A DNA stretch of 64,000 nucleotides, taken from NCBI GenBank assembly GCA_001643675.2, contig LSRY02000031.1, positions 1,135,393 to 1,199,392 on the forward strand, written 5' to 3'. The position numbers and the translations under genes were made by a program. The notes beneath the pieces are model-generated. The model worked only from the letters and a program-made list of their open reading frames with translations. It was not told the origin of the DNA and made no database searches. Of the stretch, positions 5,581-64,000 are shown in pieces; position 1 is the stretch's first letter; the number at the start of each line of letters is the position of its first letter. Source of the DNA: Monocercomonoides exilis PA203 (Eukaryota; Protista; Preaxostyla).

Positions 5581-8118
<2,538 letters not shown>

Positions 8119-15470: not shown

Positions 15471-15502
15471 AAACTTTTTCTCCAAACTTATCATTATAAA
15501 TC
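15422..15502 (+). repeat. Dispersed repeat also found at 51357-51437 (+) and mirrored at about 50276-50356 (-)
   Basis: GAAATGGGACAATATTTTTGCAATTATGAAAAAAACTGAGATTTGTTCAAAACTTTT vs GAAATGGGACGAAATTTTTGCAATTATGAAAAAAACTGAGATTTGTTCCAAACTTTT. Confidence 0.9.
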
Positions 15503-15871
15503 TTTCATTTCCATGTCAAAAAAATATAGAAAAATTCTAAATTTGAGAAAAAATGTTTATATGAGTTGAATGGAACAAAATTCAGAAAGCAAAAAATTTC
15601 ATCCCAAATATTTATCAAAAAAGGATTAGATCAACATTTTATTTTGATAATCTCTAAAGGAAACATAACATTGAACAAAACAAATCTTGTCCACATCCTA
15701 TTACGTGCTCTTTCGATAAAATTTTTAACTAATAATTTAACAAATTATATGATTTTTCATTTATAAGCTTTTTTTGAAATATTTAATGGATCTAACCTAA
15801 AGTTGATTTTTTCTTTTTGAGATCATATTGTTTTTTGTTATTTGTGGTATTAAACGGAACTGCAAATCACA

Positions 15872-35122: not shown

Positions 35123-36308
35123 AGAAATGAAATGTTTCAAATTTTGTTTTTTCACAATATCAATTTTTCTTTTGGGAGTTGTTTCCTTCACCAGCAAACG
35201 GTTGTTTGCAGCCTTATTCAATTGTAATTTTTATTGGATTGACTGATAAATTGTCAGCCAACGATGTAAATGTTTGAGGAAATGAGAGATTTTATTTATT
35301 CCAAACTCAAAAATATTTGTTTTTCTTTTCTTTTCGTTATCTCACAAAAGAGAAAACAAACAGTCATTCGAAGCCTTTTTTTTTAAATCTTTTTTGAAGA
35401 TTTTTTGAAGATTTTTTTTGAAGATTTTTGCACCTTTTCAAAATGAAATGAAGCTAAAAGAAGAATAACATATAACTGTTCGATTATCGTTTCTCTTCAC
35501 AAATCTCTTCCCCACATCAAATGCACTATTTATCACAAGCATAGCGATTTCTTCATTATCCTGCACTCTGCTTCTCGTTCAACATCTTTAAATAGCTTCT
35601 TTCATTCGTTCATTCAATTCATTTTGTAATATTTTGCATTGTCTTCTTTTGATGTTCGACATGTTGCATTGGTTTATTCATAAAGAACGGGCCAAAAATT
35701 TGATAAAAGAAGGAAAAAAAGAGTCGTCTCGGGTTCAAACAGATGACATGCAATTCAAAAAATTATTGTGAAGATATTTGTTCCAATCAGCTCGAACTTC
35801 TGATTAATCTTTCACGTAGATTTTTTTGCATTTTGCGTGCATCGCATTATTAACAAAACGAACGATAAAGATAGCAATTTTTAATGAGCATAATTTATAA
35901 AGATATTTAAAAAACCTCTAAAGAAGCCATATTCAATTCTTTTTTTGATTCAAAAATTTATCATCAAATGTTTTATGAAAATTTCGGAAGAGATTTCGTG
36001 AACATTTGATAAAAATGAAGCTTGATGCAGACCCGTTCAGTTGTTTCAAATTTTTGAATTGACAGAGATGGATAAAAAAATAAGACTAATTTTTTTCTCA
36101 TGCTAACATGTGAAAAGTTCAAAAACAAATTTCGAAAAACAATGATTAGCATTTTTTGAATTAATTCCATATGTCAATTTTTTATAATTATAATTGTTTA
36201 TTAATTGTCTTTTTTTTTTTTTTTTTTTTTTCAATATTAATTTCTTTTATTTTGTAATGACATAATTGATCGATTCTTTTTAAAAAACTCACAAAAACCC
36301 ATCTTATT

Positions 36309-39300: not shown

Positions 39301-42300
39301 ACGGGATTATTGAAGTGAAGACGAGCGCCAGACTGAAGAAGTTGAGCATGACGGTTGGAGGGGCTCTGCCATCGACACAGCGAAGTGTGATTATTGTGAG
39401 CAATGCGAGAGCCAGCTGTGTGATTCAAGATTCGTGGATTGGCCCGGAAAGCAGCGTTGGGGAGATTGGGTTTTCGATATTGGTTGTCGAAGCAGGGCAA
39501 TGCACAGCATCGGGCATTACTTTCGAGAAACTGGAGTTTAGTGATCGGGCGATGATTGGATGCTCAGGATCTGGGTCAAAGCTGATCATGAGTACTGTGA
39601 GGATTGAGAATGTGAAATGCAGGAACACAAACGGAGTGATGAATGTGGATGCGTCAGCAGAGCTGACTCTGAGCAACACGACAGTATTGGGGATGGAAAA
39701 TGGAGGCAACAGCGAGTCTGTGATTATTGGAAACCGAGCTCGGCTGGTGATGATAAGCGGGGTGAGTGTGAGTGGTGTTGGGTTGGAAGCAGGAAACGGC
39801 GGGGTGGTGAAAGGAACAATCGGGAGCGGACAGAGGCTGTGTGTGGAAAACAGCAGTGTGAATGGGGAGTGCATGAAAGGGAATGGTGGAGGGATGGAGC
39901 TGAGGCTGGAGAAAGGAGGAGTGGTTGAGATTGGGATGAGTGAGAATGTGGCATTTGCGGGATGTCGGGCTGTTGCTGCGGCAGGAGCCGGAGGGTTTGG
40001 AGGAGGGATGCATGTTGTGCTTGCTGGTACAGCAGATGATTTTGTGGTGAAGAAAGCAGAGTTCACAGGATGCAGCGCAAGCAGGAAGGGGAGCGGGATG
40101 TTTGTGAAGGCGCCTCTGCTGTCAAAAGTGATCAACAGCACAACAATCGGGTTTGGGCCTGACCTTGGGGATGAAGAAGGGCTTGCTGGGGTTGAAGGGG
40201 GCGATGAGTCGTTTTATGTGCCGTTGGTGCTGTATCTGCGGGGAGAACCAGATGTGGTTGCAGTTGGAGGAGGGAATGCGAAGGATTTTGATCGGTGTGG
40301 GTATTCGGGCTATCCGTGCCAGACAATGGATTTCGCATTGGACAGGTGGCAGCAAGACAGAGGTTTGACATGTGTGGTCGACAGGTCGACGAGTCTGTCA
40401 TGCGAGGTTGGTTTTCGAAAGGGGAGGTTCAGCATTGAAGGGAAAGAGCAGAAAGCGGTATTTGTGGTGAATGAGAACTCGGAAAAGGCTCAAGAAGGGA
40501 TGATTGAGCAGAGTGCAGAAGAGACCAACATGAGCAGGATGGAGTTTAGTATGCCACAGCAACTGAATGGCCGAGTGGCGCTGGCAAAGTGCATTGAAGG
40601 GTTGATGAGGGTTATGGAGTGCAGTGTGAGTGTTCGGCTGTCGACGAACATTGAGTTTTCAGTTTTTGTTGTTTCAGGAGGAGAACTTGGGCTAGTGGGT
40701 TTTAGGGTTGATGATGTGATGTTTTCAGGAGGATGGATGGTGAGGGTGATGGGGATGGGAATTGGATCAATGAAGGGATGCGAGGTCATTGATGTGCAGA
40801 GCGCAGAAAGCAAGGAATTATTAGAAGTGAGGGATGGAGGGGTGATGAGAGTGGAGAACACAACTATGGAAGGTGTGGCGGATAGTTTTGGATCGGCAAT
40901 AAGTGACAAGAAAGGAAAGGAGGTTTCAGTGAAGAACAGTTCTATATGTGGGATGTGGAAGGCAGAAGGGAATGGAGGGATGATAGAAGGAGAAATAGAA
41001 AATGGAATGAGGATTGAAGTGAGTGGGGTGAGGGTGAGGAACTGTGGAAGCAAAGCGGGATGTGGCGGGGGGATGAGGATTGTTTTGAAGGGGAGTGGAG
41101 AGTTTGAGTGCAGCAAAATGGAGGGGTTGAGTGAAGAGGAAATGAGGATTGCGGAGTGTGGGGCAGAAGGGAGTGGAGCGAACGAAGGGTGCGGAGGAGG
41201 ATTGATGATTGAGTGTGTGGAAGGAGGAAGTGGCTTCGCCTTGAAGAGTGTAGTGTTTGGAGTTGGAGAGGAAGAAAACAAAGCGAGCAGGGGAGGGAAG
41301 AATGTGTTTGTGAAAGGAGAAGGTCTTCGGGGGCTTGTGAATGTGGAATCATTTGGGTTTGAGTTCATGAAGGAGGTTGGGGGAACAGACCTGAAGGAGT
41401 TAGAAGGATGCGAGGATGGCTTGGAAGGGATAGTGATTCCGCTGGTAATGCTGTTTCGAGAGGCGCCGGAGCGATGCTATGTGGGCGAAGATGGAGAAGA
41501 CACATACGAATGTGGATTCAAGGATTATATGTGCGAAACAATAGAATACGGGGCAGAGCAGCGTTTTGGTGGGAAGAAAGCAATGATGAGGCTGGACAGG
41601 TCGTTTGTGATAAGAAATCGGATAGTGGTTACTGAGCAGGAGATGGAAGTTGATGGGGAAGTGAACGGGTCAGTGATTGCAGTTGAAGGAAGCAAAGGGG
41701 ATTCAGGAGATGGAGTGATTCTGATTGAGAATGCAGCAGTATTTACTGGCCTTCAGTTTTCTGTTGGAGAGCTGTCTGATGTGCCACGAAAGTGCCTGTT
41801 TGAGTGCAGTGGAGGGGAGTTGGCCCTGACAGATTGCTCGATTAACGCTCAGTCAGGAGAAGGCTTGGGAATGGTTGAATGTGCGAATGGAGGAAAAGTG
41901 AATGTCATGAGACTTCGACTTTGCGATGTGGAATTAGGATCGGTGGGAGCAATTGAGGTGAAGGGAAACGGGAGCACAGGAGTTATTGAGTGGAGTGTCT
42001 TTGAAGATGTTAAGACGAGAGGAAAGGAAGGGGTGATAGTTGCGGAAGAGGGTGGACATGTGGAAGTGATGAACAGTTCAGTGAATTGGTCTTCATTTGG
42101 GGACAACAGTGGTGTGCATGTCAGCGAAGGAGCATCAGGGATAATTGTAAAGTGCAACATGAGCGAGCTGAGGAGGGAAAACAGGGATGGAGGAGGAGTG
42201 AGTGGGGTTGCAGGAGATGGAAAGAAGATAGAGGTGAGAGAATGCGAGTTTTTTGATGTGAAGTGCTTGAGAGATATGGGAAAAGGAGGGAGTGTGAGTG

Positions 42301-45300
42301 TGAGAGTGAGGGGAGGAGGAGCACTGGAGTTTGAGGGGAATAGCGTTGGAAAGAGCATGGTGAATGAAGAAAGCGGCGTTGGAGGAGGGGTGTATGTGAA
42401 GTTTGATTCGGAGGAAGGGGTGTACTGGATGAGATACGACAGATTTGAGGAGAACAAGGCGAGTGTGGGAAGAGATGTGTATTTTGAGTGTGTGGGTGCA
42501 AGCAAGATGTTGAAGCAGATGCGATGGGTGGACACGGCTGATGAGGACGAAGAGGAGGAAGAGAAGCAGCGGCTGTGGGTGTATGACAGGAGCAACGAGC
42601 CAGTAATCAATGTGACGATGTTTGCGTTTCTGTTTCCGGCTGGTGCAGACATACTGTTTGTGGATAAAGGCGGGACCAATTTTGAGGAGTGCGGAATACA
42701 GGCAACGCCGTGCAAAGATGTGTCGTTTGGGTTTGAGAAGCTGGGAAGCACGCGAACAACGATACGGATTGTGGAATCGGCAGCTGGGAAGAGCGAGATG
42801 AGACAGAAGGATGAATCGTTGACTCTGCAAGGGAAGAACAAAGCCGAAGTTGCAACTGTTCTTCGGATGGAAGAAAATGGGGGCTTTGTTGTTGAGGGGA
42901 GCAGAAAGATGGAGCTGAGTGTCCAAAGACTGCAGGTGGTTGTCTGTGTTTCTTGGGCGAAAGAAGCTGTGTTTGGAGTTGGAGGAAAGGGGGCAGTTTC
43001 TGTGCAGAATTGTTCAATCTGCGGAGAATTGGGATCAACTTTAAGTGGAGTGGGGAATGGATGGATTGGGAAAGGAAGTGGAGGGGAGATAAGTTTTGTA
43101 TCGGTGAATTTTGAGCAAATGGAATTGGGAGCAGGATGCGGAGTGGCAGAGATGAAAGATGGAAAACTAATTGTGGAGAAGTCTAACATGAGTGGGCTGT
43201 GCGGGAGCGTGGGAGGGTTGATCTGCGGGAGGGGAGAGAGCGATGTGAGTATTCGGGAGACAAATGTGAAGGGATGCAGAGTGTTCGGTGGAAGTGTGGC
43301 AAGAATGAGTGGTGTGTCGCAGATAAAGGTGTGGCAGGGAAGTTTGATTGAAGAGTGCAGGTCCGATGAGAACATGGATGGAGGTGGGATGTGGTGTGAG
43401 CTTGTTGGAGAAAGCGAGGTGATGATAGAGGATTGCAGGTTTTGCAAGTGCATGCTGACGAAAGATAATGGAAGAGGGGGAGGAGTGTTTTTGGATTTGC
43501 AAGAGAGTGCAAGCAATAATTTTGCGTTCAAAAGAGTGACATTTGAGGGGAACACAGGAGCCAAAGGAGAAGATGTGTTTGTTGTGAGCAAATCCTTGAA
43601 TGAATCGATCATAGCAGATCGCTTTGTTGATGTATCTGGGGCTGAGGAGGGTTCTGTCCGGGCAAAGATTGCAGGAATAGACAGTGAGTTTTTTGTGGAA
43701 GAGGCGATTGATCTGTATGAGTTTCTTGTTGAGCGCAGGTTGGGAGAGATCAGAGTTGGAGAGAAAGGATACGACTTTGCAGGGTGTGGAACAGACAAGT
43801 ATCAGTGCAAAACACTATGGAGAGGATACAGAAACATTGATGGATTGGCAGCGAAAAAGAGGCTGTTGATGGATGGAGAAGTGTATGCAGAAGAAAGCTA
43901 CGATCTTTCATCATTTGAAGTGAGTTCGATGCAGGACCAGGAGGAGTCTTGTGTTCGGATTCAATTGAAAAATGGAGAAGGGGTGAACGAATGTGTGTTT
44001 GGATCGTCCACAGTGCTGGAGATGAAGTGGATTGTGTTCAAATATGAGGAGTCATTGGAAGCGGGAGCGGGATGTTTGGTGTATTCCAGTGGCAGCAAGC
44101 TGACTTTGAATCGAAGCCGATTTGAGAATATGACAAGAGGAAATGTGAAGGTGACGTTGGTGAAGTGTTCGAGTGGAGTAGTGATGATGGAAGAATGCGA
44201 AGTGTTGTGCCAGGAGTTTGAGAGTGTTCCGTTTGCGCTTTGGAGCGGAGCGGAAATAGAAGGGTGTGTATTTGATGGTTTGAGAACGCGAAAGAGCATG
44301 AAAGGTGGGGCGATATATGCAGTGCTTGGAAAGGATGGGGTGTTGAAGATGGAAAACAACACGATAGCGAGAAGTGAGTGCTCGAGGAGCGCAGGGAGAG
44401 GAGGAGGGGTGTATGTGGACAGTTTGGAGAGTGAAGCTGAAAAGCCATTTGAGTTTTGCAGAGTGCTGAAACTGGAAGGGAACGAAGCAGCAAGAGGGAA
44501 GAACATGTTCATTGCAGGCAAAGACCTGAATAAAAGTGTGAACAGAGCATCGTTTGGGTTTGAGTATGAGTTAGCTTTGGAAGACAGGAATCTGTTTGCA
44601 GGAAGAGAAGCAGAATCAAAAGAGACGGATCTGATGCGCTATCTGGTGAAATACACAAGCTGGGAGATTCATGTGTCTTCTGGAGGATGGGATGTGGAGC
44701 GGTGCGGATTCGAGGAAGATCCGTGCAAAACGTTCTGGAAAGGGATGGAGCATGTGGAGGCGCTGGTGCCGGAAAAGAAAATTGTTGTCAAAGGAGAAAC
44801 TATTATTGCAGATGGATTTGATGTGACCAACTTCAGGATCTGTTCAGAAGGGCAGGAAACTGGAGAGCAGATGCACTCGATGCTTATTTTTGAGGAGAAA
44901 AACGAGCAGTGTGGAAACACTTCGCTGTTCAACAGAGGAACGTTAGAACTGGCACAGATAGACGTGACTGTGGGTGAACAGTTTGAGAATGAGGAAAAGG
45001 CGATCATTGTCAGTGAAGGAAAGATACTGCGCATGCAAGAATGTGACTTGAAGTCGAAGGCCATATTTTCTGAAGCAGGAGATTATTCGTTTGTTGTAAT
45101 GAAAAGCGGAGGAATTGATGTGGATAGAGTGAGTGTGAAGCAGACGAATGTGATTCGCAGCGTATTTGTGATCTGCACTGGGAGCGGTGAAGGCGAGATG
45201 GGTGAGGATGGGATGATTGGGGTACGAATCAATAGGCTCGATGTCGGTTCAGTGAACATTAGCAGCGGATGTGTGGTGGATGTTGTGTGGGTGGCAGCAG

Positions 45301-48300
45301 AGAGAGGAAATGGAAGAAGCAAAGATGCATTGAGTATTATGGTGAACGGGTCAGAGTTCAGAGAAATTGCAGGGAAAAAGAACGGGGCTGGAGTGATGCG
45401 CTCGACTACAGAAGGGTCAAGAGGGATTGGGATAGAGATGAATGAGAGTGTGTTTGTGGGGTGCAAGGCAAGTGAGTCTGAGCGAGGAGGGGTGATGGAA
45501 GTGGGGCTGAATGTTGGAGGATGGTACGAGGTGAGGAAGTGTGGGATTGAGCAGTGCAGCTGCTCGACAGAAAGGGGAAAAGGAGGGGGTGTGCATTTGC
45601 ATTCATCGGTGCAAACAGGACTGGACTTTCTGTTCCAAGATTCGGTGTTCGTTTCGAACTCAGCGCACATTGGGCGAGACATTTTCATCCTGTGCTTCAG
45701 CATTGCATCCCAGATCAACGAGACGCAGTTCCGGTTTGATCTGCGGGAGTCGCATTACAGCCGGCTGAATGCAGTATATGGGATGGATGAGACAGAGTAT
45801 TTTGCAGAGGCAGTGGACTTGATGGGCTTCATTGTGGTGTATCAATCAGACATAATATTTGTATCGAGCAAAGAAGGAGAGAGAGGCGAAGACACAAAGA
45901 AGTGTGGGATTCTGACACTACCGTGTGCAACACTGGGATATGGGATGGAGCATCTTGCGTTTGAGTACAAGAGCCAGCTTGTGGTGATTGAGGAAGGGAA
46001 AGTGGACAGCGAGATTGATCTGTTCAATGTGAGTGTGACATCTCGATCGTTTGAAGAAGCGGTTGTGAGAGTGGAATTATTTGGAAGGAGCAGCAGAAGG
46101 AGTGTTATTGAGTGTTCAGAATCAGTGACGTTTGCACTGCTTCATTTTGTGTTTGGAGAAAGCACAACAACAGATCACAGCAGCTTCATAAGGAGCGAAA
46201 ATGGGATAACGCGAGTGTCGAATTGCTCATTCAGCAGCATGACAGAAGGAGGTGGGCCGGCTGATGTGCTGTGGCCGCTTGCTGAGGCTGTTTGTGGGGA
46301 GGTTGTATGGGAGAGTGTTGTTGTAAACAATCTGAACTTTCAGAGAGGCATCATTTGGGCAAGCACGATGGCAAGAGTGGTGTGCGACCATGTATCCATC
46401 AGGGATATAGGATTGGGAAAAGAGGGCTTGTTTGATGTGAAAGGGGCAGGAAATGATTTGAACATGGATGAAAAGACGAATGGGGTGCTGGCTGTGAGTC
46501 TTTCGTCAGCAATGAATGTGAGCAGTTTGAGCAACGCCTCTGAGGCACTGATACAGAGTGCATCAAGTGAGGTGTGCATAAGCATGTTCAATTGCACATT
46601 CTCAGATTGCAGATCGGTATTGGAGAAGGGGAGCATGATGAAAGTGGCTTCTTGCTCAGATGTGAGTTTGGACTCATGCCTATTTGATGGAATGAGCAAA
46701 GAAGAGGATGACCATAACAGATGGAACGGCTTCGAAAACGCTATGGAGCTGTGCAGATGGAACGGGTCGCTGATTGATGTGGCAGGATGTGAAACAGCAA
46801 TGAAGTACACCACGATATGGAATTCATGGAAAGGCGGACTGTCCGTATCTGGAGGGAAAACAACAATAGAGAAAGGAGAGTTTGCGAACAACACTGGGCT
46901 TGCGGAGAAGTATCCCTCGCTTCGAAGAAACGCATTGTGTTCTGGAGGAGGGGAGCTGAATGTTGCGAGCTTGAAAGGAGGGGATGGGATAAAAGATAAT
47001 GGCTCGCTATGGTTTTTGAATGAGGGATGTGAGCTTGGCGGAATTGCTTCTGAAAGACTATCAGCATTGTTTATTCCCATATTGAATTCTGTGGAGACAG
47101 AAAGGTCGGGGAGTGATCTGAGCCTGAGATTCAAAGGGCTGCTTCTTCTTCCGTGCAACTTGTCTTTTCGGCTTATTTCGAGTGCCGGAAGTGCAGAATC
47201 TGTGGAGACATATGAGCTTGAAGAAAACGAATTTGTGTCTGAGTCCGAGGTTTGCACATTCATATCATTGGCAAAGATTGAAGCTGCAACAGAAGAAGAA
47301 GAAGTGTTTGTGGCGATTGCATTTGGAAATCATTCATCAGCAAGCTCCACAGAACGCTTCATAGTGAAGAATAGAAGCAAGTCTGAGGCAAGTGGAAATG
47401 ATAAAAGTGTAGAGGGAGGAAAGGAAGGAAAATTTTCATGGGTTTTGATTGTTTGCATTGTAATTGTGGTAATACTGTTAATAGTATCAATAATATTCAT
47501 TGTTCGATGGAAGAAGGTGAAGAATGAAGCAGAAGATCTGAGAGAAATTGTAAACGACAACATCAGAAAGGATCCGAAGGCATTTGAAATGGTGACAATG
47601 GAGATGTCACCCGAGGAGCAATGGAGGAGAGCAGAGAGGGAGGCAGAAAAGAAGAATGAAGAAAGAATAAAGAAGAGGGTGTATGAAAAGACAATGGAGC
47701 ATTCAGAGTCATCGGAGCATTTGTTGAGTGAGAGTGGATCAACTGAATACATTCTGGGAAGAGATTCAGATAAGATTCCCGAATGGGCACTGGAAAAAGT
47801 TGACGAGAAGGAAGAAGAGGAAACAAGGAAAATAACACCATCACCTTCCATTTCATCCATTTCGTCCACAGACACTTCAGACACAGATTCTTCTTTTATT
47901 CATGGGGAGGATCTGTGCCCAACCACCCTCATCGATGTCGAATCTGGTGGATGCAATGGCATGCTCATGTCCATACGAGAAACTGATTGTGGATTTGAGG
48001 GATTCGCTGTTTATGTTGTTGCACGGGCTGAATAAGACAAAAGAGATGGCGATTGGCACACCAAAGGAGAGGGAGATGACAGGTGCTCAGATTCTGTTCT
48101 GGGTTGCGAATGGGGCACTCCATTCATTTGATGAGATGGAAAATCCACTTCAATCATTGACAAATCTGAGTCCACACATTGTGTTGTTCTCAGAGCACAT
48201 GGTGATCACAGTTGCAATGCACTCAGATTGCTCTTCTTCATCCGATGACTCTGATTCTTCATCAATCTCTTCATCAACCATTGTCACCTCTTCCTCTGAC

Positions 48301-48786
48301 ATTTCATTGATGAGCAGGAGAGGAAGAGACTCGCCACCACCTTCATCTGCGTTTGAGGATGATGAAGACAATCGATATGAATGTTTGCGGTGGAAGGCAC
48401 CAGAGCTGCTGAATGGAATCAAGAAGCATGCCACAAAGAAAACAGTTGCGTTTTCAATAGGGATGATGCTCTGGGAGTGCTTGACTCTGAATGTTCCGTT
48501 TGGGGAATATGAGGCAGCGGTAGCTGGGCAGAAGATTGCTAATGGAGAAAGGCCAAACACAGAAATGATTCGAAGCTCCAAATTGTTTGGCGCAGTTAGG
48601 GCATGCCTGTCGCAAGAGGCAAAACAAAGATTGCAGCTGGGTGATTTGAAGAGAGAGTTTTTCCAACTGTTTCCGGCCGGAGCCACAATAATGACGATGA
48701 GTGATGCGATCATCGATGAAGAAGTGTCTGGAGTTATCGAGAGCAAAAGCGGCAAGGGCAGGATGAATGCAGATCAAAAGATATAA
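36309..48786 (+). CDS. Giant type I membrane protein (about 4158 aa): beta-helix/Pmp-like ectodomain, single TM, degenerate TKL-type pseudokinase; one +1 frameshift at 47926-47928
   Basis: Signal peptide, GGAI/FxxC-type repeats, 8 Cys modules, TM FSWVLIVCIVIVVILLIVSIIFIV at about 47432-47505, C-terminal RWKAPELL...FSIGMMLWECLTLNVPF. The inverted copy reads through the frameshift site in frame (CPTTSSMSNL). Confidence 0.85.
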
Positions 48787-51700
48787 GACAGGCACAAGGG
48801 ATTACTATCATCAAGCAAAAGAACCGTTCAATTGGAATGTGAAAGTCAAGTCAACTGGCTTTTGGAACTGAGATCGATTTTTTTTAGTCATCCACACTAC
48901 AGCAAAGGCAGCAACAGTAAAAACAAAAGAATAAGAGCTTATTTCAGATATTGAAATATAATAATTGATCGAATCGCATTCTAAGAGAAAGAGAGAAAGA
49001 AAATATGTATTGATTTATCTTCGAGATTTTTTTCTTTTCTTTTCATTTTCCAAATAATGTTGATTTTTTTAAAAAAAAAAATAAACAACGCTAAAAAGAA
49101 CCTTGTGCAAAAGCACTTTTCATTTCATAACAACAACAACAGAAATTTAATGTTTCAATGTTTTTTTATTTTTTCACCTTCATAATTGTCCATTGACTGA
49201 TGGCTGAAAAATACATTAAAAAAAGTCACCAATGATTGAAATCTACCTTGACTTGGCTTGCACAACTTTGTTGAAGTGTTTTTTAAACATCCACAAATGA
49301 GTTATGAATGATGCCAAATAATACTTGATAGCTGCCATTTTCGAAAATAGAGAATTTTACAGGCAATGCTTCAACCATTTATTATTTGTGATAATGTTCA
49401 GGGCTGCCATCAAGTCTTGTGTTCACTCTTTTTTTATTAATTAAAAATTAGTAATTTCTCGTTGAAAATAGATTTTTATTTAAAAAAATTCAAAACAAGA
49501 ATCAATTTAACGAATCATCTTTCTTTTCTTTGTTATTTTTGCGTTTCATCATTCTCTTTATCAAAAATTTTTATCAAAAAAATATTCAATTTGATCTCGT
49601 TCTTTTTTTCTTTTTCTTTCTTTTTTTTTAAATTACCTCTCAACCATTTGTTCAATTTTTATTTATTTCTTTTCTTTTCTTTTCCTTTCCATTTCCTCAT
49701 TTCGCTTCAAATGCGCTTCACAATTGTTTATCAGTTATTTTTCTGGATTTGACGGACAAATAAAATAAAATTTGTTTCTGAACGAAGAAAGAGGATATTT
49801 TGAAATTATCAATATTTTTCGAAGAAATGGACTAAAATAATTGCGGAAAACACAACTGCACATGAAATCATTTTTTCATAGCAAATTATGTTGTTAAAGT
49901 GTAAATGGAATATGGAAGAAAACTTCATGTGAGTCTCTATCTATCTTTCTTTCTTTTTCTTTCGCTGAATAAGAGTACGATTATAGAACGTTAAATAATG
50001 ATGGCAGAGAAGCTTTGAGTATTTCAAATACTCCTCTGCCAAGAAGTTGGAGAAAGTGATTGTCGTGAGGAATAAATGCGACAATATCGATATTAATTTC
50101 ACTGAATGATTTGCAAATAGACGGAACTCCACATGAAGAATGTGAATAGATGAGAAAAGGAGATTTTTCTATTTGGAACGAAATTTATTGCTTTAAAAAT
50201 TTTATTCCATTGTCCTCTAACAAATATTTTTCTCAATTTTTGGATTTTTCTGTTATAATTTGCATAGTTTCGTTTGATTTATAATGAAATGAATGTGTGA
50301 AAAGTTTGGAACAAATCTCAGTTTTTTTCATAATTGCAAAAATTTCGTCCCATTTCTTATGATAGAGTCGAATTTTTAATGGGACATTATTTTTTGACTC
50401 GTATTTTTTTTTATTTTTGCTTGCCAACTTCTGAAAAGAAGTGAATGGCTTTCAGCTCTTTTATAAACTTTTATAAACAAGTTCAATTCATTTTATTCAG
50501 TGTTTATTTTTTATTTTTATTTTTATTTTTATTTTTTTGATAATTTAAAAAGGATTTTTTCCAGCTTACTGATCATCGCACAAGAAATCAATCACTTGTT
50601 TCATATGTCTAAATTTATTTGAAAAGTTCCTTTTGCTTAATTTTTAAATAAAAATATAAATTTATATTTCGATCACATTTCAGTTCTCTCTATTGAAACT
50701 TCACAAAAATAGAAATAATACAATTGTCAAGATTTTGTTTTCATGACGTAGAAATTTGGTGAGTGGAAACAGTGATTTGATCGAAATATAGCTGATCCTT
50801 TTTGAAATCATATTTTTTCTCTAAAAATATTTGGTTTGAAAATTTGTTTTGCATATTTGTCAGTGAACTTATAAAAGTGATAACACTGTTTTCAAAAAAA
50901 AATTTCGTTAATGCATTTTAAAAATGTGCTTCATTAAACAATTGCAACTTATTAAATACTGGAATGATAACATTCAATTCATTGACAAACGAAAATTAAA
51001 AATTCGAAACCCCGAAATAAGTTATTACAACAAAAATAATCACTCATATGAATTTTTAATTTTATTTGAAAATTAAGCAAAAGGAACTTTTCAAATAAAT
51101 TTAGACATATGAAACAAGTGATTGATTTCTTGTGCGATGATCAGTAAGCTGGAAAAAATCCTTTTTAAATTATCAAAAAAATAAAAATAAAAATAAAAAT
51201 AAAAAATAAACACTGAATAAAATGAATTGAACTTGTTTATAAAAGTTTATAAAAGAGCTGAAAGCCATTCACTTCTTTTCAGAAGTTGGCAAGCAAAAAT
51301 AAAAAAAAATACGAGTCAAAAAATAATGTCCCATTAAAAATTCGACTCTATCATAAGAAATGGGACGAAATTTTTGCAATTATGAAAAAAACTGAGATTT
51401 GTTCCAAACTTTTCACACATTCATTTCATTATAAATCAAACGAAACTATGCAAATTATAACAGAAAAATCCAAAAATTGAGAAAAATATTTGTTAGAGGA
51501 CAATGGAATAAAATTTTTAAAGCAATAAATTTCGTTCCAAATAGAAAAATCTCCTTTTCTCATCTATTCACATTCTTCATGTGGAGTTCCGTCTATTTGC
51601 AAATCATTCAGTGAAATTAATATCGATATTGTCGCATTTATTCCTCACGACAATCACTTTCTCCAACTTCTTGGCAGAGGAGTATTTGAAATACTCAAAG

Positions 51701-54700
51701 CTTCTCTGCCATCATTATTTAACGTTCTATAATCGTACTCTTATTCAGCGAAAGAAAAAGAAAGAAAGATAGATAGAGACTCACATGAAGTTTTCTTCCA
51801 TATTCCATTTACACTTTAACAACATAATTTGCTATGAAAAAATGATTTCATGTGCAGTTGTGTTTTCCGCAATTATTTTAGTCCATTTCTTCGAAAAATA
51901 TTGATAATTTCAAAATATCCTCTTTCTTCGTTCAGAAACAAATTTTATTTTATTTGTCCGTCAAATCCAGAAAAATAACTGATAAACAATTGTGAAGCGC
52001 ATTTGAAGCGAAATGAGGAAATGGAAAGGAAAAGAAAAGAAAAGAAATAAATAAAAATTGAACAAATGGTTGAGAGGTAATTTAAAAAAAAAGAAAGAAA
52101 AAGAAAAAAAGAACGAGATCAAATTGAATATTTTTTGATAAAAATTTTTGATAAAGAGAATGATGAAACGCAAAAATAACAAAGAAAAGAAAGATGATTC
52201 GTTAAATTGATTCTTGTTTTGAATTTTTTAAATAAAAATCTATTTTCAACGAGAAATTACTAATTTTTAATTAATAAAAAAGAGTGAACACAAGACTTGA
52301 TGGCAGCCCTGAACATTATCACAAATAATAAATGGTTGAAGCATTGCCTGTAAAATTCTCTATTTTCGAAAATGGCAGCTATCAAGTATTATTTGGCATC
52401 ATTCATAACTCATTTGTGGATGTTTAAAAAACACTTCAACAAAGTTGTGCAAGCCAAGTCAAGGTAGATTTCAATCATTGGTGACTTTTTTTAATGTATT
52501 TTTCAGCCATCAGTCAATGGACAATTATGAAGGTGAAAAAATAAAAAAACATTGAAACATTAAATTTCTGTTGTTGTTGTTATGAAATGAAAAGTGCTTT
52601 TGCACAAGGTTCTTTTTAGCGTTGTTTATTTTTTTTTTAAAAAATCAACATTATTTGGAAAATGAAAAGAAAAGAAAAAAATCTCGAAGATAAATCAATA
52701 CATATTTTCTTTCTCTCTTTCTCTTAGAATGCGATTCGATCAATTATTATATTTCAATATCTGAAATAAGCTCTTATTCTTTTGTTTTTACTGTTGCTGC
52801 CTTTGCTGTAGTGTGGATGACTAAAAAAAATCGATCTCAGTTCCAAAAGCCAGTTGACTTGACTTTCACATTCCAATTGAACGGTTCTTTTGCTTGATGA
52901 TAGTAATCCCTTGTGCCTGTCTTATATCTTTTGATCTGCATTCATCCTGCCCTTGCCGCTTTTGCTCTCGATAACTCCAGACACTTCTTCATCGATGATC
53001 GCATCACTCATCGTCATTATTGTGGCTCCGGCCGGAAACAGTTGGAAAAACTCTCTCTTCAAATCACCCAGCTGCAATCTTTGTTTTGCCTCTTGCGACA
53101 GGCATGCCCTAACTGCGCCAAACAATTTGGAGCTTCGAATCATTTCTGTGTTTGGCCTTTCTCCATTAGCAATCTTCTGCCCAGCTACCGCTGCCTCATA
53201 TTCCCCAAACGGAACATTCAGAGTCAAGCACTCCCAGAGCATCATCCCTATTGAAAACGCAACTGTTTTCTTTGTGGCATGCTTCTTGATTCCATTCAGC
53301 AGCTCTGGTGCCTTCCACCGCAAACATTCATATCGATTGTCTTCATCATCCTCAAACGCAGATGAAGGTGGTGGCGAGTCTCTTCCTCTCCTGCTCATCA
53401 ATGAAATGTCAGAGGAAGAGGTGACAATGGTTGATGAAGAGATTGATGAAGAATCAGAGTCATCGGATGAAGAAGAGCAATCTGAGTGCATTGCAACTGT
53501 GATCACCATGTGCTCTGAGAACAACACAATGTGTGGACTCAGATTTGTCAATGATTGAAGTGGATTTTCCATCTCATCAAATGAATGGAGTGCCCCATTC
53601 GCAACCCAGAACAGAATCTGAGCACCTGTCATCTCCCTCTCCTTTGGTGTGCCAATCGCCATCTCTTTTGTCTTATTCAGCCCGTGCAACAACATAAACA
53701 GCGAATCCCTCAAATCCACAATCAGTTTCTCGTATGGACATGAGCATGCCATTGCATCCACCAGATTCGACATCGATGAGGTGGTTGGGCACAGATCCTC
53801 CCCATGAATAAAAGAAGAATCTGTGTCTGAAGTGTCTGTGGACGAAATGGATGAAATGGAAGGTGATGGTGTTATTTTCCTTGTTTCCTCTTCTTCCTTC
53901 TCGTCAACTTTTTCCAGTGCCCATTCGGGAATCTTATCTGAATCTCTTCCCAGAATGTATTCAGTTGATCCACTCTCACTCAACAAATGCTCCGATGACT
54001 CTGAATGCTCCATTGTCTTTTCATACACCCTCTTCTTTATTCTTTCTTCATTCTTCTTTTCTGCCTCCCTCTCTGCTCTCCTCCATTGCTCCTCGGGTGA
54101 CATCTCCATTGTCACCATTTCAAATGCCTTCGGATCCTTTCTGATGTTGTCGTTTACAATTTCTCTCAGATCTTCTGCTTCATTCTTCACCTTCTTCCAT
54201 CGAACAATGAATATTATTGATACTATTAACAGTATTACCACAATTACAATGCAAACAATCAAAACCCATGAAAATTTTCCTTCCTTTCCTCCCTCTACAC
54301 TTTTATCATTTCCACTTGCCTCAGACTTGCTTCTATTCTTCACTATGAAGCGTTCTGTGGAGCTTGCTGATGAATGATTTCCAAATGCAATCGCCACAAA
54401 CACTTCTTCTTCTTCTGTTGCAGCTTCAATCTTTGCCAATGATATGAATGTGCAAACCTCGGACTCAGACACAAATTCGTTTTCTTCAAGCTCATATGTC
54501 TCCACAGATTCTGCACTTCCGGCACTCGAAATAAGCCGAAAAGACAAGTTGCACGGAAGAAGAAGCAGCCCTTTGAATCTCAGGCTCAGATCACTCCCCG
54601 ACCTTTCTGTCTCCACAGAATTCAATATGGGAATAAACAATGCTGATAGTCTTTCAGAAGCAATTCCGCCAAGCTCACATCCCTCATTCAAAACCATAGC

Positions 54701-57700
54701 GAGCCATTATCTTTTATCCCATCCCCTCCTTTCAAGCTCGCAACATTCAGCTCCTCCTCCAGAACACAATGCGTTTCTTCGAAGCGAGGGATACTTCTCC
54801 GCAAGCCCAGTGTTGTTCGCAAACTCTCCTTTCTCTATTGTTGTTTTCCTCCAGATACGGACAGTCCGCCTTTCCATGAATTCCATATCGTGGTGTACTT
54901 CATTGCTGTTTCACATCCTGCCACATCAATCAGCGACCCGTTCCATCTGCACAGCTCCATAGCGTTTTCGAAGCCGTTCCATCTGTTATGGTCATCCTCT
55001 TCTTTGCTCATTCCATCAAATAGGCATGAGTCCAAACTCACATCTGAGCAAGAAGCCACTTTCATCATGCTCCCCTTCTCCAATACCGATCTGCAATCTG
55101 AGAATGTGCAATTGAACATGCTTATGCACACCTCACTTGATGCACTCTGTATCAGTGCCTCAGAGGCGTTGCTCAAACTGCTCACATTCATTGCTGACGA
55201 AAGACTCACAGCCAGCACCCCATTCGTCTTTTCATCCATGTTCAAATCATTTCCTGCCCCTTTCACATCAAACAAGCCCTCTTTTCCCAATCCTATATCC
55301 CTGATGGATACATGGTCGCACACCACTCTTGCCATCGTGCTTGCCCAAATGATGCCTCTCTGAAAGTTCAGATTGTTTACAACAACACTCTCCCATACAA
55401 CCTCCCCACAAACAGCCTCAGCAAGCGGCCACAGCACATCAGCCGGCCCACCTCCTTCTGTCATGCTGCTGAATGAGCAATTCGACACTCGCGTTATCCC
55501 ATTTTCGCTCCTTATGAAGCTGCTGTGATCTGTTGTTGTGCTTTCTCCAAACACAAAATGAAGCAGTGCAAACGTCACTGATTCTGAACACTCAATAACA
55601 CTCCTTCTGCTGCTCCTTCCAAATAATTCCACTCTCACAACCGCTTCTTCAAACGATCGAGATGTCACACTCACATTGAACAGATCAATCTCGCTGTCCA
55701 CTTTCCCTTCCTCAATCACCACAAGCTGGCTCTTGTACTCAAACGCAAGATGCTCCATCCCATATCCCAGTGTTGCACACGGTAGTGTCAGAATCCCACA
55801 CTTCTTTGTGTCTTCGCCTCTCTCTCCTTCTTTGCTCGATACAAATATTATGTCTGATTGATACACCACAATGAAGCCCATCAAGTCCACTGCCTCTGCA
55901 AAATACTCTGTCTCATCCATCCCATATACTGCATTCAGCCGGCTGTAATGCGACTCCCGCAGATCAAACCGGAACTGCGTCTCGTTGATCTGGGATGCAA
56001 TGCTGAAGCACAGGATGAAAATGTCTCGCCCAATGTGCGCTGAGTTCGAAACGAACACCGAATCTTGGAACAGAAAGTCCAGTCCTGTTTGCACCGATGA
56101 ATGCAAATGCACACCCCCTCCTTTTCCCCTTTCTGTCGAGCAGCTGCACTGCTCAATCCCACACTTCCTCACCTCGTACCATCCTCCAACATTCAGCCCC
56201 ACTTCCATCACCCCTCCTCGCTCAGACTCACTTGCCTTGCACCCCACAAACACACTCTCATTCATCTCTATCCCAATCCCTCTTGACCCTTCTGTAGTCG
56301 AGCGCATCACTCCAGCCCCGTTCTTTTTCCCTGCAATTTCTCTGAACTCTGACCCGTTCACCATAATACTCAATGCATCTTTGCTTCTTCCATTTCCTCT
56401 CTCTGCTGCCACCCACACAACATCCACCACACATCCGCTGCTAATGTTCACTGAACCGACATCGAGCCTATTGATTCGTACCCCAATCATCCCATCCTCA
56501 CCCATCTCGCCTTCACCGCTCCCAGTGCAGATCACAAATACGCTGCGAATCACATTCGTCTGCTTCACACTCACTCTATCCACATCAATTCCTCCGCTTT
56601 TCATTACAACAAACGAATAATCTCCTGCTTCAGAAAATATGGCCTTCGACTTCAAGTCACATTCTTGCATGCGCAGTATCTTTCCTTCACTGACAATGAT
56701 CGCCTTTTCCTCATTCTCAAACTGTTCACCCACAGTCACGTCTATCTGTGCCAGTTCTAACGTTCCTCTGTTGAACAGCGAAGTGTTTCCACACTGCTCG
56801 TTTTTCTCCTCAAAAATAAGCATCGAGTGCATCTGCTCTCCAGTTTCCTGCCCTTCTGAACAGATCCTGAAGTTGGTCACATCAAATCCATCTGCAATAA
56901 TAGTTTCTCCTTTGACAACAATTTTCTTTTCCGGCACCAGCGCCTCCACATGCTCCATCCCTTTCCAGAACGTTTTGCACGGATCTTCCTCGAATCCGCA
57001 CCGCTCCACATCCCATCCTCCAGAAGACACATGAATCTCCCAGCTTGTGTATTTCACCAGATAGCGCATCAGATCCGTCTCTTTTGATTCTGCTTCTCTT
57101 CCTGCAAACAGATTCCTGTCTTCCAAAGCTAACTCATACTCAAACCCAAACGATGCTCTGTTCACACTTTTATTCAGGTCTTTGCCTGCAATGAACATGT
57201 TCTTCCCTCTTGCTGCTTCGTTCCCTTCCAGTTTCAGCACTCTGCAAAACTCAAATGGCTTTTCAGCTTCACTCTCCAAACTGTCCACATACACCCCTCC
57301 TCCTCTCCCTGCGCTCCTCGAGCACTCACTTCTCGCTATCGTGTTGTTTTCCATCTTCAACACCCCATCCTTTCCAAGCACTGCATATATCGCCCCACCT
57401 TTCATGCTCTTTCGCGTTCTCAAACCATCAAATACACACCCTTCTATTTCCGCTCCGCTCCAAAGCGCAAACGGAACACTCTCAAACTCCTGGCACAACA
57501 CTTCGCATTCTTCCATCATCACTACTCCACTCGAACACTTCACCAACGTCACCTTCACATTTCCTCTTGTCATATTCTCAAATCGGCTTCGATTCAAAGT
57601 CAGCTTGCTGCCACTGGAATACACCAAACATCCCGCTCCCGCTTCCAATGACTCCTCATATTTGAACACAATCCACTTCATCTCCAGCACTGTGGACGAT

Positions 57701-60700
57701 CCAAACACACATTCGTTCACCCCTTCTCCATTTTTCAATTGAATCCGAACACAAGACTCCTCCTGGTCCTGCATCGAACTCACTTCAAATGATGAAAGAT
57801 CGTAGCTTTCTTCTGCATACACTTCTCCATCCATCAACAGCCTCTTTTTCGCTGCCAATCCATCAATGTTTCTGTATCCTCTCCATAGTGTTTTGCACTG
57901 ATACTTGTCTGTTCCACACCCTGCAAAGTCGTATCCTTTCTCTCCAACTCTGATCTCTCCCAACCTGCGCTCAACAAGAAACTCATACAGATCAATCGCC
58001 TCTTCCACAAAAAACTCACTGTCTATTCCTGCAATCTTTGCCCGGACAGAACCCTCCTCAGCCCCAGATACATCAACAAAGCGATCTGCTATGATCGATT
58101 CATTCAAGGATTTGCTCACAACAAACACATCTTCTCCTTTGGCTCCTGTGTTCCCCTCAAATGTCACTCTTTTGAACGCAAAATTATTGCTTGCACTCTC
58201 TTGCAAATCCAAAAACACTCCTCCCCTCTTCCATTATCTTTCGTCAGCATGCACTTGCAAAACCTGCAATCCTCTATCATCACCTCGCTTTCTCCAACAA
58301 GCTCACACCACATCCCACCTCCATCCATGTTCTCATCGGACCTGCACTCTTCAATCAAACTTCCCTGCCACACCTTTATCTGCGACACACCACTCATTCT
58401 TGCCACACTTCCACCGAACACTCTGCATCCCTTCACATTTGTCTCCCGAATACTCACATCGCTCTCTCCCCTCCCGCAGATCAACCCTCCCACGCTCCCG
58501 CACAGCCCACTCATGTTAGACTTCTCCACAATTAGTTTTCCATCTTTCATCTCTGCCACTCCGCATCCTGCTCCCAATTCCATTTGCTCAAAATTCACCG
58601 ATACAAAACTTATCTCCCTCCACTTCCTTTCCCAATCCATCCATTCCCCACTCCACTTAAAGTTGATCCCAATTCTCCGCAGATTGAACAATTCTGCACA
58701 GAAACTGCCCCTTTCCTCCAACTCCAAACACAGCTTCTTTCGCCCAAGAAACACAGACAACCACCTGCAGTCTTTGGACACTCAGCTCCATCTTTCTGCT
58801 CCCCTCAACAACAAAGCCCCCATTTTCTTCCATCCGAAGAACAGTTGCAACTTCGGCTTTGTTCTTCCCTTGCAGAGTCAACGATTCATCCTTCTGTCTC
58901 ATCTCGCTCTTCCCAGCTGCCGATTCCACAATCCGTATCGTTGTTCGCGTGCTTCCCAGCTTCTCAAACCCAAACGACACATCTTTGCACGGCGTTGCCT
59001 GTATTCCGCACTCCTCAAAATTGGTCCCGCCTTTATCCACAAACAGTATGTCTGCACCAGCCGGAAACAGAAACGCAAACATCGTCACATTGATTACTGG
59101 CTCGTTGCTCCTGTCATACACCCACAGCCGCTGCTTCTCTTCCTCCTCTTCGTCCTCATCAGCCGTGTCCACCCATCGCATCTGCTTCAACATCTTGCTT
59201 GCACCCACACACTCAAAATACACATCTCTTCCCACACTCGCCTTGTTCTCCTCAAATCTGTCGTATCTCATCCAGTACACCCCTTCCTCCGAATCAAACT
59301 TCACATACACCCCTCCTCCAACGCCGCTTTCTTCATTCACCATGCTCTTTCCAACGCTATTCCCCTCAAACTCCAGTGCTCCTCCTCCCCTCACTCTCAC
59401 ACTCACACTCCCTCCTTTTCCCATATCTCTCAAGCACTTCACATCAAAAACTCGCATTCTCTCACCTCTATCTTCTTTCCATCTCCTGCAACCCCACTCA
59501 CTCCTCCTCCATCCCTGTTTTCCCTCCTCAGCTCGCTCATGTTGCACTTTACAATTATCCCTGATGCTCCTTCGCTGACATGCACACCACTGTTGTCCCC
59601 AAATGAAGACCAATTCACTGAACTGTTCATCACTTCCACATGTCCACCCTCTTCCGCAACTATCACCCCTTCCTTTCCTCTCGTCTTAACATCTTCAAAG
59701 ACACTCCACTCAATAACTCCTGTGCTCCCGTTTCCTTCACCTCAATTGCTCCCACCGATCCTAATTCCACATCGCAAAGTCGAAGTCTCATGACATTCAC
59801 TTTTCCTCCATTCGCACATTCAACCATTCCCAAGCCTTCTCCTGACTGAGCGTTAATCGAGCAATCTGTCAGGGCCAACTCCCCTCCACTGCACTCAAAC
59901 AGGCACTTTCGTGGCACATCAGACAGCTCTCCAACAGAAAACTGAAGGCCAGTAAATACTGCTGCATTCTCAATCAGAATCACTCCATCTCCTGAATCCC
60001 CTTTGCTTCCTTCAACTGCAATCACTGACCCGTTCACTTCCCCATCAACTTCCATCTCCTGCTCAGTAACCACTATCCGATTTCTTATCACAAACGACCT
60101 GTCCAGCCTCATCATTGCTTTCTTCCCACCAAAACGCTGCTCTGCCCCGTATTCTATTGTTTCGCACATATAATCCTTGAATCCACATTCGTATGTGTCT
60201 TCTCCATCTTCGCCCACATAGCATCGCTCCGGCGCCTCTCGAAACAGCATTACCAGCGGAATCACTATCCCTTCCAAGCCATCCTCGCATCCTTCTAACT
60301 CCTTCAGGTCTGTTCCCCCAACCTCCTTCATGAACTCAAACCCAAATGATTCCACATTCACAAGCCCCCGAAGACCTTCTCCTTTCACAAACACATTCTT
60401 CCCTCCCCTGCTCGCTTTGTTTTCTTCCTCTCCAACTCCAAACACTACACTCTTCAAGGCGAAGCCACTTCCTCCTTCCACACACTCAATCATCAATCCT
60501 CCTCCGCACCCTTCGTTCGCTCCACTCCCTTCTGCCCCACACTCCGCAATCCTCATTTCCTCTTCACTCAACCCCTCCATTTTGCTGCACTCAAACTCTC
60601 CACTCCCCTTCAAAACAATCCTCATCCCCCCGCCACATCCCGCTTTGCTTCCACAGTTCCTCACCCTCACCCCACTCACTTCAATCCTCATTCCATTTTC

Positions 60701-63700
60701 TATTTCTCCTTCTATCATCCCTCCATTCCCTTCTGCCTTCCACATCCCACATATAGAACTGTTCTTCACTGAAACCTCCTTTCCTTTCTTGTCACTTATT
60801 GCCGATCCAAAACTATCCGCCACACCTTCCATAGTTGTGTTCTCCACTCTCATCACCCCTCCATCCCTCACTTCTAATAATTCCTTGCTTTCTGCGCTCT
60901 GCACATCAATGACCTCGCATCCCTTCATTGATCCAATTCCCATCCCCATCACCCTCACCATCCATCCTCCTGAAAACATCACATCATCAACCCTAAAACC
61001 CACTAGCCCAAGTTCTCCTCCTGAAACAACAAAAACTGAAAACTCAATGTTCGTCGACAGCCGAACACTCACACTGCACTCCATAACCCTCATCAACCCT
61101 TCAATGCACTTTGCCAGCGCCACTCGGCCATTCAGTTGCTGTGGCATACTAAACTCCATCCTGCTCATGTTGGTCTTTTCTGCACTCTGCTCAATCATCC
61201 CTTCTTGAGCCTTTTCCGAGTTCTCATTCACCACAAATACCGCTTTCTGCTCTTTCCTTCAATGCTGAACCTCCCCTTTCGAAAACCAACCTCGCATGAC
61301 AGACTCGTCGACCTGTCGACCACACATGTCAAACCTCTGTCTTGCTGCCACCTGTCCAATGCGAAATCCATTGTCTGGCACGGATAGCCCGAATACCCAC
61401 ACCGATCAAAATCCTTCGCATTCCCTCCTCCAACTGCAACCACATCTGGTTCTCCCCGCAGATACAGCACCAACGGCACATAAAACGACTCATCGCCCCC
61501 TTCAACCCCAGCAAGCCCTTTCTTCATCCCCAAGGTCAGGCCCAAACCCGATTGTTGTGCTGTTGATCACTTTTGACAGCAGAGGCGCCTTCACAAACAT
61601 CCCGCTCCCTTCGCTTGCGCTGCATCCTGTGAACTCTGCTTTCTTCACCACAAAATCATCTGCTGTACCAGCAAGCACAACATGCATCCTCCTCCAAACC
61701 CTCCGGCTCCTGCCGCAGCAACAGCCCGACATCCCGCAAATGCCACATTCTCACTCATCCCAATCTCAACCACTCCTCCTTTCTCCAGCCTCAGCTCCAT
61801 CCCTCCACCATTCCCTTTCATGCACTCCCCATTCACACTGCTGTTTTCCACACACAGCCTCTGTCCGCTCCCGATTGTTCCTTTCACCACCCCGCCGTTT
61901 CCTGCTTCCAACCCAACACCACTCACACTCACCCCGCTTATCATCACCAGCCGAGCTCGGTTTCCAATAATCACAGACTCGCTGTTGCCTCCATTTTCCA
62001 TCCCCAATACTGTCGTGTTGCTCAGAGTCAGCTCTGCTGACGCATCCACATTCATCACTCCGTTTGTGTTCCTGCATTTCACATTCTCAATCCTCACAGT
62101 ACTCATGATCAGCTTTGACCCAGATCCTGAGCATCCAATCATCGCCCGATCACTAAACTCCAGTTTCTCGAAAGTAATGCCCGATGCTGTGCATTGCCCT
62201 GCTTCGACAACCAATATCGAAAACCCAATCTCCCCAACGCTGCTTTCCGGGCCAATCCACGAATCTTGAATCACACAGCTGGCTCTCGCATTGCTCACAA
62301 TAATCACACTTCGCTGTGTCGATGGCAGAGCCCCTCCAACCGTCATGCTCAACTTCTTCAGTCTGGCGCTCGTCTTCACTTCAATAATCCCGTTCACTCC
62401 CATGCTGCTCCCCACCATCCTCATCTTGCTCATGTCTTCTGTCCCGCTCCACACATATCCCTTCTCATCATCCAGCACAAGGCTCTCGTTCAGCTGATAG
62501 CTTCCCCACACCAGCACCTGGTGGCAATCTGACTGCTGTCCAAGTGCATATCCCACGCTCAGACACCGATACTCCGAAAACCCGCAGGGCCTCACATCTG
62601 TCCCATCTTCTCCCACTGACACATTCCCTTCTCTGCTTCTCAGATAGAACACCAGCGGCACCCACACTCCACGCAATCCGTCATTCATCCCTCTGCACTC
62701 TCAATACTGAACTCCCTCTCAGAGTAATATCCAAAGCTTGTCCTTGTCACAACCTTCTCCAGATGCGGAGCAAACACACACACATCCTCCCCGTGTGCTG
62801 CACTGTTTCCGGAAAATTGAATAGCCCCAATCTTGAACCCTGCTTCCTCTCCCAACACTCTCACACATATCCCTCCTCCACATCCTCTCCTCCCCTCCTC
62901 TGCCTCATTCCTGTTTCCACCTCCGCTCGTTTTTTTCATTTGTTGTCTCACTTCTGCTTCCACTTCCACTTCCTTCTTCTGCTCTGCATCTCTCAAATCC
63001 TGCCTCCATCCCTGCTCCCCCAATTCCACAATCACACCCATTCTCCACCACCACCTCAATTCCCCCACGTTCCCTTTTCTGACACACACAGTCTTTCACG
63101 CTGATGTTCTGAATCCACACTTTCTCTGTTGCTCCCCCATTCTTCCCAACAACTGCCCCGTTTCCTTCTCTGCGCGTGATATTAGAGAAGTTGCTTCCAT
63201 CCATCTCCACCATCCCCCATTCCCCCACTCAATCACCCCACAATTCTCCAGCTCGATGTTCTTCACTGTGCATTGCGCCATCTTCATCTTTCCAGCTTTC
63301 ACTCCAAAATACGAATGCTGCCCAACCGCACTTGTCGCTGCAGACATGATCTCGCACCTCAGAAAGCTCACTTCTGATCCTTTGCCGCTCATCTCCAGCA
63401 ACGCCTGCTGGCATTCATTCGAAATGGTGTGCTTCAGGATCATCCCAGCCATCTGCATCGATCCACTCTCCACTTCAAACATCGCATGCCCAACTGCATT
63501 CGTCACAACTGTCACTGTCTCCTCCTCCTCATTTTCGTCTTTGTTCGGCTCTATCATAACATTCATCTGCGCAATCACCATCTCGCTCTCCTCGTATGTT
63601 CCCTCGCACCCTGATCAGCTCATGATGCCAATCCACCCATCTTGATACACCGTATTTCAGTGTCTTGCATTCATGCGACACAGCCCCACACAGGTAATAA

Positions 63701-64000
63701 TCGCCTGTGGATTCTGTTGTGCTTTGCTTCACATCCACAAGAATAATCCTGTTCATTTCGGAAGAACTCACTGGCAACCATTCATCATGGAATGTTGGAT
63801 TTTCGCAAGCGAATGAATAAAAATTGCACAAACATATTCTTTTTTGTTTTATTGGATATTGAATATCGAATCAGTTATCCATTCTGAAGTTACCATTGAA
63901 GAAAATCCATCTCCAAAATAAACATCAAAGCCATATTTGTTATTACCGAAAACTTCATTACATATAAATAAGCAATGCTTAAATGAAACATTTTTCTTTT
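37690..64000. repeat. Giant inverted duplication: left arm about 37690-50644, spacer about 50645-51068, right arm 51069 to window end
   Basis: Mirror ORFs, e.g. 50233-50427(-)/51286-51480(+) sum to 101713. The sum drifts to about 101690 at the edge through small indels. The window end matches about 37690. Confidence 0.97.
52922..64000 (-). pseudogene. Inverted second copy of the giant receptor-pseudokinase, split by many 1-2 nt indels; 5' end lies outside the window
   Basis: ORF fragments 52922-54697, 54835-58218, 58657-59613, 59663-61234, 61645-62688 and others match the + copy in peptide. Breaks checked mostly fall in homopolymers and may be sequencing error rather than true pseudogenisation. 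Confidence 0.6.

Follow-up and report, generated by a model that had tools for sequence, protein, structure and literature searches.

Transposon hairpins at the axes of a small and a large palindrome in Monocercomonoides exilis

The window analyzed here is the last 64 kb of contig C27 in the assembly of the gut protist Monocercomonoides exilis (an oxymonad), which was made from nanopore reads of unamplified, sheared DNA with Canu, Nanopolish and Pilon (PMC8767320). Genome searches covered 82,301,135 bp in 101 contigs. Self-comparison of the window confirmed both palindromes described in an earlier note on this DNA, one at 13536-15067 (arms 99.5% identical) and one at 37691-63999 (99.7%). Away from them, an intron-containing gene at 5581-8118, recognized from its sequence, presumably encodes a Cdc48/p97 AAA ATPase, and 33730-35122 is a member of a large hypothetical gene family with at least 38 matches at 69-75% identity. 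The features of the palindromes, in order along the window, are as follows.

13538-15065, no strand: family-A foldback transposon with ends GGGTCAAC/GTTGACCC, TA-flanked; this is the 1.5-kb palindrome
13712-13966, plus strand: MITE M in the left arm of A, ATAT-flanked (filled versus empty site)
14637-14891, minus strand: mirror copy of M in the right arm of A, 254/254 identical to the left-arm M
15427-15605, plus strand: MITE C outside the small palindrome, AAAT-flanked, ~180 bp
36309-48786, plus strand: large surface protein gene, mostly within the left arm of the large palindrome, with a frame break near 47926
37691-50667, plus strand: left arm of the large palindrome, from self-comparison, its extent set by the assembled right arm
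50175-50351, plus strand: MITE C in the left arm, ATTT-flanked; mirror copy at 51362-51538
50365-50602, plus strand: decayed outer arm of a family-A-type foldback; mirror copy at 51111-51348
50607-51106, no strand: hairpin MITE D, interrupted by M, with its centre on the palindrome axis at 50856.5
50790-51045, plus strand: MITE M in the D loop, ATAT-flanked, an element without counterpart at the C64 paralog
51046-64000, minus strand: right arm of the large palindrome, reaching the contig end and including ~11 kb from the 3′ end of the gene, where the assembly has indels

The small palindrome is one copy of a foldback-type non-autonomous DNA transposon, family A, whose members are nearly all arm (~450-bp arms and a ~100-bp loop) and have the same ends at 16 or more loci, the dispersed copies lying in unrelated flanks. 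The genome contains 183 A termini and ~90 or more copies. The window copy measures 1.5 kb rather than the usual ~1.0 kb because the same M is present in each arm. TA stands on both sides of most copies; TA is self-complementary and no empty site of A was seen. An IS630-Tc1-mariner partner was sought among the 108 DDE_3 matches in the genome, none of which lies between the 100 A ends listed. The DDE_3 matches include many open frames of 340-550 aa, one frame of 343 aa is found at a distance of 600 bp from an A copy (C47:833570), and mirrored DDE_3 pairs occur at C18:1274130-1276846, C12:717156-719463 and C1:1944677-1947098.

M, as defined by the alignment of copies from many contigs, is a non-coding element of 255 bp with ~25-bp inverted ends, present in 600 or more copies, with full-length, uniform copies dispersed over many contigs. 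Comparison of filled and empty sites among 18 family-A copies gave one tetramer where M is lacking and ATAT on both sides where it is present, and M carries its own 4-bp duplication in both palindromes; it is a MITE, a passenger that entered two different hosts by independent insertions. Like M, C is an ordinary MITE; both insert at AWWT sites, also within other elements, and ATAT, ATTT and AAAT are among the flanks of M, C and D. A 4-bp AWWT duplication is a criterion of the Sola1 superfamily (PMC3845634), and M, C and D match Sola1-like MITEs in their mostly AWWT duplications, G-starting ends and lengths of 180-260 bp; one D copy differs in having AGAT, and the likeness is a resemblance only. 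A short M-like end fragment lies at 15192-15257, between the small palindrome and its neighboring C copy. Further MITE/foldback families were seen at L025:613-854 and 1061-1310, L038:156-754, L037:2171-2536 and L010:748-2743; the L025 pair combines D-like bodies with M-like ends, which suggests that M and D share a transposase.

The earlier note had described the loop of the large palindrome as a diverged, collinear copy of part of the small palindrome arm, and the alignment is indeed better than that of shuffled sequence (~67-70% identity; global score 24 vs −90 ± 17, maximum −46). The collinearity is that of two M copies over ~255 bp (13712-13966 vs 50790-51045; local score 49 vs 26 ± 4 for shuffles, maximum 41) and accounts for only 256 of the 378 bp of the loop, the remainder being D. 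Beyond M, the weaker similarity that had been proposed does not rise above chance (right flank 36 vs a mean of 27, maximum 40; left flank 23 vs 21, maximum 32). A second shared block, placed at 15422 and 51357, is real, but it is the ~180-bp MITE C at 77% identity rather than an 80-bp block, and its copy at 15427-15605 lies 360 bp outside the small palindrome.

In the large palindrome, arms at 37691-50667 and 51046-63999 enclose a 378-bp loop (50668-51045). The right arm reaches the end of the contig, so that the 26 kb quoted previously is a minimum length. Telomeric repeats are absent at this contig end, and our search of the genome found no other contig on which the right arm continues. In the arm alignment there are 27 gap events, most of them deletions within homopolymers of the right arm, and one substitution; four further substitutions adjoin the loop, and the arms are identical outward of 50644/51069. 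The surface protein has a hydrophobic N-terminus, a G/S/V-rich ectodomain, one transmembrane segment and a C-terminal kinase-like domain that matches PF07714 in Pfam (E 7e-8); the pieces of the gene were searched separately, not as a joined protein, and a 3,908-aa piece gave no Pfam match. A look-up of the two gene pieces among public assemblies returned nothing. The frame break near 47926 is confined to the left arm, the right arm reading through the same place. The duplicated gene belongs to the expansion of kinase-bearing surface proteins, a kinase family noted in the M. exilis genome paper (PMC8767320). On C64, 583 bp (412982-413564) are 99% identical to window 36308-36890, the start of the gene from its ATG, and are possibly a recent conversion tract or the missing outer junction of the large palindrome.

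The centre of the large palindrome is a nest of elements in which, moving toward the axis, C is followed by the decayed family-A arm and then by D with M in its loop. D is ~240 bp long, with inverted ends of ~85 bp and a 4-bp duplication; its end motifs occur 588 times in the genome, of which D makes up about 0.1-0.2%. The palindrome axis coincides with the centre of D to half a base and lies 61 bp from the centre of M, and the folding energy of D is −98 kcal/mol as compared with −38 kcal/mol for M. With its four mismatches kept beside the loop, the axis is the centre of a pre-existing short inverted repeat whose spacer has been retained. The segment at 50365-50602 scores 107 against family A (39 ± 5 for shuffles; nhmmer E 7e-6), and its matches in the genome coincide with A termini; the two palindromes do therefore have a repeat family in common, as the earlier note held, by way of this decayed A arm beside D and not by way of the segment named there. 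The empty site of the C at 50175-50351 is present in a short-read contig, with 4 ambiguous letters.

The reality of the 13-kb mirror was assessed with contigs from four short-read runs of one study, placed on window 48000-53700 with simple repeats left out (49591-49700, 50497-50545, 50637-50676 and two more); from contig make-up, run X1 is taken as Illumina and runs X3 and X4 as 454. Exact arm contigs in X1 have depths of 206-289, compared with 72-82 at the unique D/M junctions and 77-112 at other single loci, giving an arm depth 2.6-3.5 times that of the loop, although contig depth is a rough measure, not raw reads, and hairpin loops can be under-sampled. The mirror could alternatively be a nanopore/Canu artefact, with reads folded back at D, the contig ending there and only a ~1-kb local palindrome being real, and the 98% paralog on C64, which adds to arm depth, lends this some weight. 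When words in common with C64 are allowed for, however, the implied single-copy depth is 88-104 with two arms and 153-175 with one, the latter against 72-112 at unique junctions. Over 48205-49590, a 1,386-bp contig has 0 differences from the left arm, where C64 differs at about 25-29 sites; X1 has no alternative letters at any position and has dropped the C64 alleles at every site, and a 1.1-kb X4 contig (2016) agrees along its whole length. As contigs drop the rarer variant, the window allele outnumbers the C64 allele. Neither a depth step nor a fork appears in the short-read contigs at the old arm boundary near 49600.

The contig end without telomere, the lack of a continuation elsewhere and the 27 gap events with their single substitution are also features that a folded-read artefact would leave, but true inverted duplicates sequenced on nanopores should show errors of this pattern too (PMC7229812), and similar mirrors are contig-internal (on C25, C80 and others). 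The right-arm deletions are absent from the X1 contigs and the 47926 break is read through by the other arm, so the frameshifts look like unpolished nanopore errors, a warning that second arms with frameshifts should, in this assembly, be read as sequencing errors and not as pseudogenes. The short-read contigs shown bridge at most 19 bp past the last arm difference, and it is the nanopore assembly that joins the arms in inverted orientation over 13 kb. The artefact is unlikely on balance; the 13-kb mirror is likely to be real, and contig depth together with the majority allele makes a copy-number gain of the arm probable. A whole-genome-amplification chimera is excluded, the library having had no amplification step (PMC8767320).

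Family A provides a second record of symmetry. Across 18 copies, 350 departures from the consensus are common to both arms of a copy and 46 are private to one; for changes unique to a single copy the numbers are 116 and 19. The arms are 98-100% identical in 17 copies, as against 91-97.5% to the nearest other copy, and are sisters on the tree in 17 of the 18. Private changes form tracts near the tips and the loop, and one copy has arms identical over 1-205 and divergent over 206-387. A further A copy, on C47, also carries M in each arm, inserted where the window copy has it. Within each of these two copies M is identical in both arms, yet between them M is only ~76% alike while the host A is ~90% alike, suggesting two independent M insertions, each copied across arms. 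The arms of family A are homogenized in place, one arm being copied onto the other, and the mirror runs past the element end by ~20 bp in one copy and by 1.3 kb or more in another, on C25. At C25:1692777-1696445 there is a contig-internal perfect mirror on an A centre with arms of 1,835 bp or more, the outer end of which was not reached. Polishing was rejected as a cause of arm identity; arms 5-10% apart would map uniquely, and a 259-bp insertion is not copyable by polishing.

This pattern resembles that of the Galileo/Foldback elements, in which arms are 98-100% identical within copies and 92-97% between them, an excess ascribed to conversion, with repeat extension also proposed (PMC3573991). 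Galileo, however, is P-like, with 7-bp duplications and repeats that extend inward; family A is TA-flanked, consists almost wholly of arm, holds nested MITEs copied whole to both arms and extends outward into host DNA. Cut-and-paste repair can rebuild inverted repeats, as was proposed for Galileo (PMC3573991), and A-arm identity could then arise from transposition and gap repair, with the giant palindromes as segmental duplications of unrelated origin whose arms stay alike through ordinary gene conversion. On that account the common substitutions could derive from master copies outside the sample, but the window A copy has no sibling above 94-95%, the symmetric changes reach terminal and target bases, the mirrors extend into the flanks and the axes fall exactly on element centres. 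We regard it as improbable, more so than the sequencing artefact.

Mirrors centred on elements recur beyond the window. The axis of a ~2-kb mirror on C80 (1554476.5) is exactly on a D centre, that of the C25 mirror is the centre of an A, and D lies at the turn of a palindrome on C64; with the window, four cases, two of them paralogous, make up the axis test, and they came from searches that used the elements as queries rather than from an unbiased census. On C64, a paralogous gene (93-98% identical) ends in a palindrome with ~1.1-kb arms round a D without M. These arms are 93-95% and 88-94% identical to the window arms; C is missing on the left, and on the right there is a C in the other orientation. 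A D-centred palindrome without M implies that the axis is older than the arrival of M, and the divergence of the C64 arms that their palindrome is not a read artefact. C64 and the other axes were judged by match coordinates and identities. Another member of the gene family at 33730-35122 lies ~100 bp past the C64 palindrome arm.

Inverted pairs with equal or near-equal search scores were seen at C75 58358, C36 540821, C32 697838, C10 1446213 and 1299452, C80 1676140, C14 105992 and C25 2419168. They are probably further palindromes, five of them of receptor-kinase paralogs; the window's own pair aside, five inverted pairs were found among 40 paralog hits.

The earlier note had cast M as the nucleator of fold-back and of receptor-gene amplification. 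Its general idea, that inverted repeats make the duplications, holds for the hosts, with axes at D (C27, C64 and C80) or A (C25), and the amplification holds insofar as the arms carry the surface-protein/kinase gene and its duplication appears real in short reads; M is not the cause. Although M occurs in both structures and the palindrome at C80:1674675-1677605 has M at both outer ends, nucleation by M is very improbable and largely refuted, since M lies midway along the arm of the small palindrome and away from the axis of the large one, folds weakly, is missing from the C64 palindrome and is at the centre of a mirror in none of nine dispersed M loci. The M end motif occurs 1,244 times in the genome (0 in the control), or about once per 64 kb, an abundance at which about one M is expected per window and its presence at both palindromes is expected by chance.

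From the nesting, the axes, the homogenization and the outward extension, all observed, we infer a mechanism: the palindromes were probably made by foldback priming or template switching and arm-to-arm conversion at the inverted repeats of the hosts A and D. A break or stalled fork near a long-stem element would start the process; one strand would pair within the element's own repeats and be extended, or the nascent strand would switch template between arms. Short tracts would overwrite one arm with the other, leaving mutations and whole nested insertions in both. Long tracts would pass the element end and copy host DNA inverted, over ~20 bp, ~1.1 kb, 1.3 kb or more, or 13 kb or more, and a second event must stabilize the product. 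At the window locus, a first event at D may have made arms of about 1.1 kb, still visible at C64, after which M and C would have arrived; a recent event beginning inside the D repeat would then have made or re-homogenized arms of 13 kb or more and duplicated most or all of the receptor-kinase gene. The data here do not separate foldback priming from template switching at a fork or from a deletion between two inverted copies of D.

Yeast, mammalian cells and Tetrahymena are systems in which steps of this kind are established (PMC6007334, PMC7467729, PMC10766186). As in foldback priming (at the 42-bp repeat of Tetrahymena rDNA and in yeast and mammalian amplification, PMC6007334, and in yeast foldback inversions, PMC7467729), the unpaired centre of a large near-perfect palindrome is the spacer that an already existing short inverted repeat had, and the original mismatches of that repeat are kept beside the loop. 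The M. exilis case differs in being natural and apparently tolerated in a standing genome, in having an abundant MITE as its seed and an axis that seems to have been used twice, and in its outer junction, which lies beyond the assembly. Inverted amplification with a junction at an interrupted repeat is likewise found in ODIRA (PMC10766186). The repeats of ODIRA are ~5 nt long, its spacers 40-80 nt, and two junctions mark the triplications it gives, as against a stem of ~85 bp, a spacer of 120-380 bp and the single junction seen in M. exilis. Metamonads are without Ku, DNA-PKcs and Ku/NHEJ (PMC8516963), a lack that could raise the rate of palindrome formation in M. exilis. The likely agent, in our view, is the host's own repair at work on transposon hairpins and not a system dedicated to amplification, which makes this a natural instance of a known process.

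The new points of the present analysis are the support from short reads, a paralog by which the axis is dated to before M, and the homogenization of arms across family A, copied insertions included; among the papers searched, none joins Monocercomonoides with inverted and palindromic DNA. Most of what is known about palindromes forming at short inverted repeats comes from engineered yeast, tumours and Tetrahymena rDNA. In M. exilis it seems to be natural and to run on transposon hairpins, the specific element proposed earlier being an ordinary one, and about a hundred family-A copies can serve as replicate reporters of copying between arms, over tracts of a few bases to many kb. That hairpin elements drive gene-family expansion in general is suggested. 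A bolder reading, possible but doubtful at present, is that M. exilis copies arm-to-arm unusually often at every transposon hairpin, seeding mirrors that would be a main route of receptor-kinase family expansion; the cause would perhaps be the lack of Ku-dependent end joining together with tolerance of hairpin ends, and hundreds of MITE/foldback copies would act as standing seeds that mirror neighboring DNA repeatedly. If confirmed by a census, palindrome formation on transposon hairpins as such, without this bolder reading, would explain many of the inverted gene pairs in the M. exilis genome.
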